DNA of 64,000 bases from Thecamonas trahens ATCC 50062 (Eukaryota; Protista; Apusomonadida), in the NCBI RefSeq assembly GCF_000142905.1, contig NW_013657642.1:131851-195850 (forward strand). The letters run 5' to 3'. Position numbers and translations under genes: made by a program. Shown piece by piece: positions 62,347 to 64,000 of this stretch. The notes under the pieces were generated by a model, which saw nothing but the letters and a program-made list of their open reading frames with translations, was not told the origin of the DNA and did not search any database. Positions within the stretch are counted from its first letter, which is position 1, and the number at the start of each line of letters is the position of its first letter.

Positions 62347-62809
62347 CACACCAGTACGGAAGAAGGTCACCAACCGGCAGTGACGTTGTCTGGCGAGACA
62401 AGTACTCGTCCGTCTCTACTCTCCCGTCCTCTGTCTCCTTCTGTTGAGGACCCTGTCCGTCCGGGTCGTGGTTGAGCAGCCGGCAGTCGGCAGGAGGGGG
62501 GGGGGAGGGAGGGGGGGGAGGGGGGGGGGATGGTGATGATGGAAGCAGGAGCAGGAGAGGGGGTGTTGGTTGTGCGAGAGGGTGGAATCAGATACTTGTT
62601 GGCAGAGCATAGCTGTGGACGAATGTGGGGTCGATCGAGCAGATCGCCCCTTTTGAGTAGCTCCCTCTCTCATCCATGGCCCGGCTCGGCTACCTGATCT
62701 GCTGGGTTTGCGGCGGACATGGCAAGCGTGGCGGCCACACGGCGTGACAGGGGGAGGGGAGGGGAGGGGAGGGGAGGGGGGGCAGACTCGTCACGGCATT
62801 GGGGAGGAT

Positions 62810-64000
62810 ATGTTTGCGGTGCTGCGGTATACGACGATGGCGACGGTGGCGAGTCGTGCTGCGTGTGCTGCTTTGGCTGCTTCGGCTGCTTTGACTGCTG
62901 CGGCTGCTCCGGGACGTCGGGCAGCGTCGGGCTTTGGTCGTGGACCACATGACGTTGGCGGGGCGATTGTGTCGCCGGACGAGGCTACGGCGTTCAAGGC
63001 TGAGCTGGGCAAGGAGGGTGCGCCGGCGGCACTGTGGGAGGTCCGGACGCATGCGCTTCTCGGTCTGGTGGTGGGCAAGGGCCTGATGACTGTAGACGAG
63101 TTGCGGGCAGGCATCGAGGGCCTTGATCCGGTGGCTTACGGCGGTCTGTCGTACTATGAGAAGTGGGCCTTCTCCATGGCCCAGGCGCTGACGGCTCGCG
63201 GAACTCTTTCGCCGACGGTGTTGGAGACTGCCATCAACGGCGATGTTGTGCGCGGCGATGAGATTGACTCGGCGCCGGTCCCGCTGAGCGTCGGCCAGCC
63301 GGTCCGGGTCCGGCGCGAAGAGCCGCGCCCTGCATGGTCGCGGCCGCACCTGCGGACGCCTGGATACCTTCACGGCGCCGTTGGCGTCGTCGATGAGTAC
63401 TGGGGTGAGTTTCCGGATCCGGAGCTTCTCGCTCGGCGGATCGAAGGCCCGAAGCTGCCGCTGTATTCGGTCCGGTTCCTGCAGGCTGTTCTCTGGGAGC
63501 TGTACGATGGCTCGCCTCATGACGCGACGTCGGTTGAGGTCTATCACCCGTGGCTTGAACCAATTTCATCCGAGGCACTGGCTACGGCAGAGGCGGCAGC
63601 GGTGGCGTCGATGAACAAGGTGCATGGCAGTGGCCGCAGCCATCACGACCACGCCCACGACCACGCCCACGCCCACGACCACGACCACGACCACGATCAT
63701 GTCCACGAGGAGCGATGCGTGGTCGAGAGTAACGCGATTGCGGCCGAGAGCGAGCACGCGCTCGGCGAAGGTAACTCGCCGCTGCAACGGTTGTCGGGGG
63801 CACTGGTGGAGGCGCTGGTGGACAGCGGGCTGGTCAGCCGCGACGAGGTGCGGGCCAAGATCGAGAGCGTGGAGAAGATGAGTGAGAGTGGAAGCGAAGT
63901 GGGCGCCCGACTGGTGGTGGAGGCATGGCTTGACGATCAGTTTAGAGAGCTGCTTGTGGCCGATGCGCCGGCGGCGGCTGAGGCCATCGGCATCGAAACT
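62810..64000 (+). CDS. Eukaryotic-type fused nitrile hydratase (beta subunit, His-rich linker, start of alpha subunit); truncated at window end
   Basis: Not in the ORF track because the frame runs off the end. Manual translation gives beta GPHDVGG, WEVRTHAL, TVDELRAGIE, YYEKW, VGQPVRV, HLRTPGYLHGAVG, LYSVRF and VEVYHPWLEP; linker HHDHAHDHAHAHDHDHDHDHVH; alpha LVEALVDSGLV and GARLVVEAWLDDQFRELLVADA. Confidence 0.95.
   Translation, partial: MFAVLRYTTMATVASRAACAALAASAALTAAAAPGRRAASGFGRGPHDVGGAIVSPDEATAFKAELGKEGAPAALWEVRTHALLGLVVGKGLMTVDELRAGIEGLDPVAYGGLSYYEKWAFSMAQALTARGTLSPTVLETAINGDVVRGDEIDSAPVPLSVGQPVRVRREEPRPAWSRPHLRTPGYLHGAVGVVDEYWGEFPDPELLARRIEGPKLPLYSVRFLQAVLWELYDGSPHDATSVEVYHPWLEPISSEALATAEAAAVASMNKVHGSGRSHHDHAHDHAHAHDHDHDHDHVHEERCVVESNAIAAESEHALGEGNSPLQRLSGALVEALVDSGLVSRDEVRAKIESVEKMSESGSEVGARLVVEAWLDDQFRELLVADAPAAAEAIGIET

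Follow-up and report, generated by a model that had tools for sequence, protein, structure and literature searches.

Predicted mitochondrial presequence on the fused cobalt-type nitrile hydratase of Thecamonas trahens

The gene for a fused beta-alpha nitrile hydratase (NHase) lies at the end of a 64,000-nucleotide stretch of the genome of the apusomonad Thecamonas trahens ATCC 50062 (RefSeq assembly GCF_000142905.1, contig NW_013657642.1, positions 131,851 to 195,850 of the forward strand), which was analysed as a whole and is referred to below as the window. Enzymes of this family hold Co(III) with three cysteines, two of them oxidised, and hydrate nitriles to amides. The T. trahens NHase was found to carry a 45-residue N-terminal extension, and the enzyme is probably mitochondrial, with the extension serving as its matrix-targeting presequence. 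Import into mitochondria had been proposed in an initial annotation of the window; it is supported by the presequences of the same genome and by the family pattern of N-termini, but stays a prediction made in silico. The enzyme, its fusion and its His tract were already known, whereas the predicted mitochondrial location appears to be new. In the literature searched, where the cellular location of eukaryotic NHases was not addressed, neither a report of an organellar NHase nor localisation or proteomic data were found (the searches covered NHase with mitochondria, targeting, Thecamonas and algae as well as the two founding papers, and most subscription journals lay outside them). If true, a location in the matrix would limit the candidates for the natural substrate to nitriles that arise in mitochondria or enter them. 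It would also raise the questions of how non-corrin cobalt gets into the matrix and how, without the bacterial activator, the cysteines of the active site are oxidised there.

The N-terminal extension and the presequences of the same genome

The predicted cleavable presequence comprises residues 1–45 (62810–62944, + strand), ahead of P46 and the HDVGG motif of the beta-subunit start (62948, +), and was recognised from its composition, from a model built on presequences of the genome and from the AlphaFold2 structure. It contains 17 alanines, five arginines and no aspartate or glutamate, with a net charge of +5. A bacterial beta chain would begin near query residue 45, as judged from the PDB beta chains, in which chain residue 29 is aligned with query residue 73. 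An Ala/Arg-rich, acid-free extension of about 45 residues ahead of HDVGG, together with a second in-frame ATG at 62837, had been described in the initial annotation, and all of these features were confirmed. Between the upstream stop and 62810 there is no other in-frame ATG, and methionines are found at M1, at M10 (62837–62839, +) and then at M93, inside the beta domain. With no methionine between M10 and M93, any protein with the HDVGG start carries at least residues 10–46, and the extension must be translated. Its Ala-Ala-Leu/Ser core is encoded by 5.1 tandem copies of the 9-nt unit GCTGCTTCG (62867–62912, +), as identified by repeat finding, and this repeat accounts for the low GC content at third codon positions (GC3) of the extension, 0.49 vs 0.78 in the remainder of the gene. 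With residue frequencies as in the mature part, the chance of an extension with a net charge of +5 and no acidic residues would be 7e-4. AlphaFold2, run on an alignment of 76 sequences, placed in this region a lone helix (residues 6–30, predicted local confidence (pLDDT) 50–66) followed by coil to residue 46, outside the fold. As for peroxisomal signals, neither a type 1 targeting signal (PTS1; the C-terminus is GVTR) nor, in the first 60 residues, a PTS2 pattern was found.

Seven complete presequences from the genome, those of mtHsp70, MDH, Nfs1, PDH-E1alpha, Mn-SOD, ETF-alpha and EF-Tu, were used as controls. Hsp60, ATP synthase alpha and beta, and succinyl-CoA ligase alpha and beta were left out, their first exons being cut by 5' introns or runs of N, and the same held for the second ETF subunit and for three of four M16 peptidase loci; only partial presequences were obtained from aconitase, ATP synthase alpha and one M16 peptidase. 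A side observation was that the presequence occupies a small exon of its own in many mitochondrial genes, with an intron just upstream of the mature domain; such introns were seen at L004, L006, L013, L021 and L024 (Hsp60, ATP synthase beta and alpha, succinyl-CoA ligase alpha and aconitase). The control presequences abound in Ala, Ser, Thr, Val and Gly. They contain 2–5 basic residues, are acid-free except for one Glu near the end of that of Nfs1, and have, adjoining the mature domain, a Ser or Ala that follows an Arg by two or three residues.

On a log-odds composition model of these presequences, the NHase extension scored 0.44 bit/residue, while the controls, each scored with itself left out, gave values of 0.07–0.48, and N-termini that are not presequences (Fe-SOD, fumarase, two citrate synthases and cystathionine beta-synthase) gave −0.48 to +0.15. 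A score of 0.44 was reached by 3 of 2,801 (0.1%) random Met-started open reading frame (ORF) windows of the genome. The protein starts with MF, as do four of the seven controls, against a background of 1.9% of Met starts. The motif RRAAS (residues 36–40; 62915–62929, +) is a candidate site for the matrix processing peptidase, with Arg at −2 or −3, and was chosen on the basis of RAAS in matrix proteins of the same genome: RAAS, which forms residues 37–40 of the NHase with a second Arg ahead of it, precedes the mature domain of mtHsp70, mitochondrial-type MDH and aconitase by 7–17 residues, and its background expectation is 0.0097 per 45 residues. A drop in GC3 was also seen in six of the seven control presequence-coding regions (0.52–0.72 vs 0.55–0.89 downstream).

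Family pattern and competing readings of the extension

A comparison of eukaryotic NHase N-termini, which the initial annotation had suggested, was made with a word-based protein search that gave 554 relatives at E ≤ 1e-5; the best 120 of the 554, all of them full-length beta-alpha fusions, were analysed. The beta start is preceded by fewer than 20 residues in 62 of these 120, by a basic and acid-poor extension in 37 and by an extension of another kind in 18. The 37 presequence-like N-termini clustered by clade in a FastTree phylogeny of the two core domains, for which local support values only, and no bootstrap, were computed. They were present in 22 of 35 members of the clade with the diatoms Cyclotella and Amphora and in 10 of 15 members of the clade with Prymnesium and Polarella (haptophyte/dinoflagellate-containing), although some of the rows without an extension inside these positive clades may be incomplete gene calls, and they were absent from the green-algal (0/13) and rotifer (0/20) clades. 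The T. trahens sequence paired with its nearest relative, a marine metagenome protein (P0002) that is 51% identical, carries an extension of the same style, starts with MF-x-V and reaches a score of 0.47 with the T. trahens model. As the N-terminal classes cluster by clade, the extension of T. trahens is no isolated case, and the clades with and without presequence-like N-termini offer natural comparison groups. A conserved box of a different kind, P-[IV]-D-D-G-x-G-Q-W, was noticed between the presequence-like N-terminus and the beta start in the Prymnesium/Polarella clade (P0008–P0010, P0018, P0020, P0021, P0024–P0026, P0039, P0077, P0084, P0097, P0111 and P0119); the T. trahens protein is without it.

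Several results weigh against a presequence. Composition alone is weak evidence, since random GC-rich stretches are often acid-free: in the six-frame translation of the GC-rich window, 17% of 45-residue stretches were acid-free and 8% also had 4–9 Arg/Lys. The composition model has a small basis, being trained on the seven controls only. The helix of residues 1–30 is not more amphipathic than its shuffled versions (hydrophobic moment 0.26 vs 0.27), the first 30 residues hold only two arginines, the Ala-rich core from the 9-nt tandem repeat could be neutral slippage, and the hydropathy peaks, in the 10-residue stretch 19–28, at a Kyte-Doolittle value of 2.01, which none of the seven controls reaches, leaving a small chance of an endoplasmic reticulum (ER) signal. 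MDH, Mn-SOD and EF-Tu of the genome are likewise not above shuffled sequences in hydrophobic moment, a measure that did not tell real from shuffled presequences in T. trahens. A generic presequence rule (at most one acidic and at least three basic residues in the first 30), which the NHase fails with its two arginines, was set aside, and the controls of the same genome were used instead.

One competing reading is that of a cytosolic enzyme with a disordered tail of low complexity and no function, which arose by slippage of the GCT-rich 9-nt repeat in a GC-rich genome. The tandem-repeat core, the frequency (8–17%) of acid-free Arg/Ala-rich stretches among random windows and the unexceptional amphipathicity are all in its favour, and so is the absence of an extension from the 62 of 120 relatives mentioned above, among them green algae, rotifers and Physarum, so that the enzyme works without one. 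Nevertheless, the composition score is matched by just 0.1% of background windows, four features agree with real presequences (the MF start, the RAAS box, its position and the GC3), and P0002 keeps the same extension design despite different residues; a cytosolic tail is considered unlikely.

The initial annotation had also suggested that a second isoform might be made from the internal ATG. Two products, from ATG 62810 and ATG 62837, would then be directed to different compartments, and leaky scanning is conceivable because the second ATG has the stronger context (acgATGg, with A at −3 and G at +4, vs gatATGt at the first). However, the form starting at Met10 keeps four of the five arginines and the RRAAS box and scores higher (0.51 bit/residue), so that both forms would be imported and a cytosolic form would not result; the MF start, shared with four of the seven controls, favours the first ATG. 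This suggestion was thus not supported, and such an arrangement is very unlikely. An ER signal peptide or signal anchor, by which the enzyme would be secreted or membrane-attached, has the hydrophobic Ala/Leu/Cys stretch of residues 19–28 to recommend it, but seems the most improbable of these readings, as the stretch consists largely of alanine, with two leucines, and so offers a weak signal-peptide core, is flanked by Arg on both sides and followed by RR, and lies in an extension whose composition agrees with the matrix controls. No secreted relative is known for cobalt enzymes with oxidised cysteines, which also counts against an ER signal.

If the extension does direct the enzyme to the matrix, cytosolic translation from ATG 62810, or possibly from Met10, would yield a precursor whose first 38–40 or so residues lead to import through TOM/TIM23. 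The matrix processing peptidase would then cut at or next to RRAAS, leaving a mature beta N-terminus only 7–9 residues longer than the bacterial one. Cobalt would be inserted, and the cysteines oxidised, inside the matrix and with no dedicated activator protein. At a guess, the substrate might be a nitrile that arises within the organelle, for example beta-cyanoalanine produced during cyanide detoxification. A CysK-like gene of the cysteine synthase family was found elsewhere in the assembly (G000:C66:141899-142849; L040), with a basic, acid-free N-terminal extension of 27 residues that scores −0.04 on the presequence composition model. It is a weak lead to a possible organellar source of nitrile, as a candidate mitochondrial cysteine/beta-cyanoalanine synthase. 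On a wider and more speculative scheme, which we think improbable, a matrix location would date far back and be common among the eukaryotic fusion NHases: apusomonads, diatoms, haptophytes and dinoflagellates would have retained it, and green algae and rotifers would have lost it. Many protists would then have in their mitochondria a cobalt enzyme of the non-corrin kind that is loaded with no activator, possibly via the H-x-H box of the linker described below, and that acts on an organellar nitrile, e.g., beta-cyanoalanine.

Catalytic domains, gene identity and the His/Asp linker

The beta-subunit domain covers residues 47–253 (62948–63568, +) and was recognised by the Pfam families NHase_beta_N (PF21006; residues 65–141, E = 2e-14, 54 bits) and NHase_beta_C (PF02211; residues 158–251, E = 3e-12, 47 bits), both above the gathering score. 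The alpha-subunit domain starts within the window (residues 327–397; 63788–64000, +), and the NHase_alpha match to this part (residues 329–396, E = 5e-11) is also above the gathering score. The gene continues for 118 codons outside the window, which were read from the flanking DNA (L001; G000:C38:192350-197350, the window itself being G000:C38:131851-195850) to a TAA at L001 3856–3858, giving a total of 515 aa. The alpha-chain CxxCSC motif, sought beyond the window as the initial annotation had advised, was found there as VCTLCSC, at residues 423–429 (L001 3577–3597). Threonine in this motif marks the cobalt type and serine the iron type. The threonine form was present in all but one of the 119 readable fusion NHases among the best 120 of 554 relatives. 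The two beta-subunit arginines that had been pointed out are also present, in DELR (residues 96–99; 63095–63106, +) and HLRTPGY (residues 180–186; 63347–63367, +), and in the alignment of 76 family members R99, R182, C424, C427, S428 and C429 are invariant. Both arginines presumably form hydrogen bonds to the oxidised cysteines, as in bacterial structures. When compared with PDB chains, the alpha part matched cobalt-type alpha chains with E values of 1e-44 to 1e-50, the best of them at 1e-48 to 1e-50, and the beta part matched beta chains with an E value of about 1e-12. The AlphaFold2 model had a confident beta and alpha core, with a mean pLDDT of 83 and with most of the beta domain above 85. 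Judged from its sequence, the enzyme is a cobalt-type NHase of the eukaryotic beta-alpha fusion clade, with NHase activity as the predicted function.

The single open frame that had been reported from ATG 62810 to the window end was borne out, with 397 codons (62810–64000, +) uninterrupted by a stop. The assembly, of 28.7 Mb in 131 contigs with about 64% GC, contains one NHase copy (NHase_alpha PF02979, 235 bits). The fused beta-His-alpha NHase that had been recognised in the initial annotation is real and of the cobalt type, but the exact gene had already been published, which that annotation did not know: it is almost certainly AMSG_07929, described by Marron, Akam and Walker (2012; PMC3323583) as a beta-alpha fusion NHase of T. 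trahens ATCC 50062. In that study AMSG_07929 was reported to be intron-free, single-copy and recovered from transcriptome data (expressed), with 12 His in the spacer and Pfam coordinates of 156–251 for beta and 324–514 for alpha. Numbering from ATG 62810 gives beta_C at 158–251, the end of the alpha domain at about 514 and a tract of 12 His; since these coordinates and the His count agree, the published model starts at ATG 62810. Neither the N-terminal extension nor localisation was discussed by Marron et al. (PMC3323583), and mitochondria were named only as a possible evolutionary source of the gene.

The linker between the beta and alpha domains covers residues 254–326 (63569–63787, +). The His/Asp-rich segment that had been noted there is present, as a tract with 12 His (63641–63708, +) encoded by a CACGAC tandem repeat of 10.8 copies (63644–63708), and residues 274–301 are disordered in the AlphaFold2 model. 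A conserved HVHEER box (63698–63715, +) was recognised in the alignment of 76 fusion NHases; more broadly, a box H-x-H-E-x-R-x-x-V-E with a short helix follows directly after the variable His tract (residues 296–313; 63695–63748), and in these 76 sequences, from many eukaryotic groups, H297, H299 and E306 do not vary and R302 hardly does. Bacterial alpha chains start aligning downstream of the box, at query residues 321–331, while the gamma chain of thiocyanate hydrolase (PDB 2DD4 chain C) aligns from query residue 289, inside the His tract. A PDB search with the linker alone returned just designed coiled coils, with E values of about 0.4. At least five His were found in the linker of 118 of the 120 fusion NHases examined (the best 120 of 554), in all clades. 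The His tract had been proposed as an opisthokont character (Marron 2012, PMC3323583), and this distribution shows that it is not one.

The suggestion, also made in the initial annotation, that the His/Asp linker is a built-in cobalt chaperone replacing the bacterial activator is compatible with any localisation of the enzyme. A homologue of the NHase activator was not found in the genome (TIGR03889, no significant match, best E = 0.098), which has a single NHase copy, and both the near-universal occurrence of the tract and its ending in H-x-H-E-x-R, with H297 and H299 invariant, speak for such a role. Against these stand the disorder of the tract in the AlphaFold2 model and the dispensability of the (His)17 region of the Monosiga NHase for metal incorporation, as given in a 2020 review (PMC7193024) citing Yang, Bennett and Holz (2018). 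A chaperone function of the linker is therefore regarded as doubtful and as less likely than not.

Upstream region and comparison with known systems

A database model of the protein (P0001, 526 aa) includes an optional, putative upstream mini-exon of 10 codons (62676–62705, +) and a putative 101-nt GT..AG intron (62706–62806, +). No support was found for this model, and the intron-free account of Marron 2012 (PMC3323583) argues against it; without splicing of 62706–62806, the mini-exon ATG would open a 23-codon upstream ORF ending at 62747. The intergenic region between the NHase gene and its divergent minus-strand neighbour, of about 440 bp, contains a G-run and a (GGGGA)x5.8 repeat at 62493–62530 and 62751–62779, and the G-run recurs on other contigs at about 90% identity. 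At its other end (10–930, − strand) the window opens inside a fumarase match that covers model positions 1–304 only. The 192 residues translated upstream of the match were identical to those of a full-length fumarase (G000:C37:82388-83764) and, in the other orientation of that locus, the translation beyond the match runs into N; this looks like a duplicated or split region of the assembly.

Compared with the presequences of its own genome (MDH L022, mtHsp70 L011, PDH-E1alpha L028 and Mn-SOD L031), the NHase extension shares the MF start, the sparse arginines and the lack of acidic residues, as well as the richness in Ala, Ser, Thr and Val, the RAAS or R-x-x-S adjoining the mature domain and the lowered GC3. 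These presequences are 18–43 residues long, and the NHase extension (45) is the longest and most Ala-rich and has the most hydrophobic core. With the bacterial cobalt-type NHases (e.g., PDB 1IRE, 2DPP and 4OB1) the T. trahens enzyme has in common an identical alpha motif, VCTLCSCYP, and both beta arginines; the bacterial enzymes consist of two separate subunits accompanied by an activator gene and have neither an N-terminal extension nor a His/Asp spacer, whereas the T. trahens subunits are fused. Another related system is the NHase of Monosiga brevicollis, which has the same beta-His-alpha fusion, is of the cobalt type and is without a known activator (Foerstner 2008, PMC2603476; Holz laboratory work cited in review PMC7193024). 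Neither an N-terminal signal nor a localisation was mentioned for it by Foerstner 2008 (PMC2603476), and it falls outside the best 120 of 554 relatives whose N-termini were classed here. The Monosiga enzyme is the only eukaryotic NHase to have been characterised biochemically.

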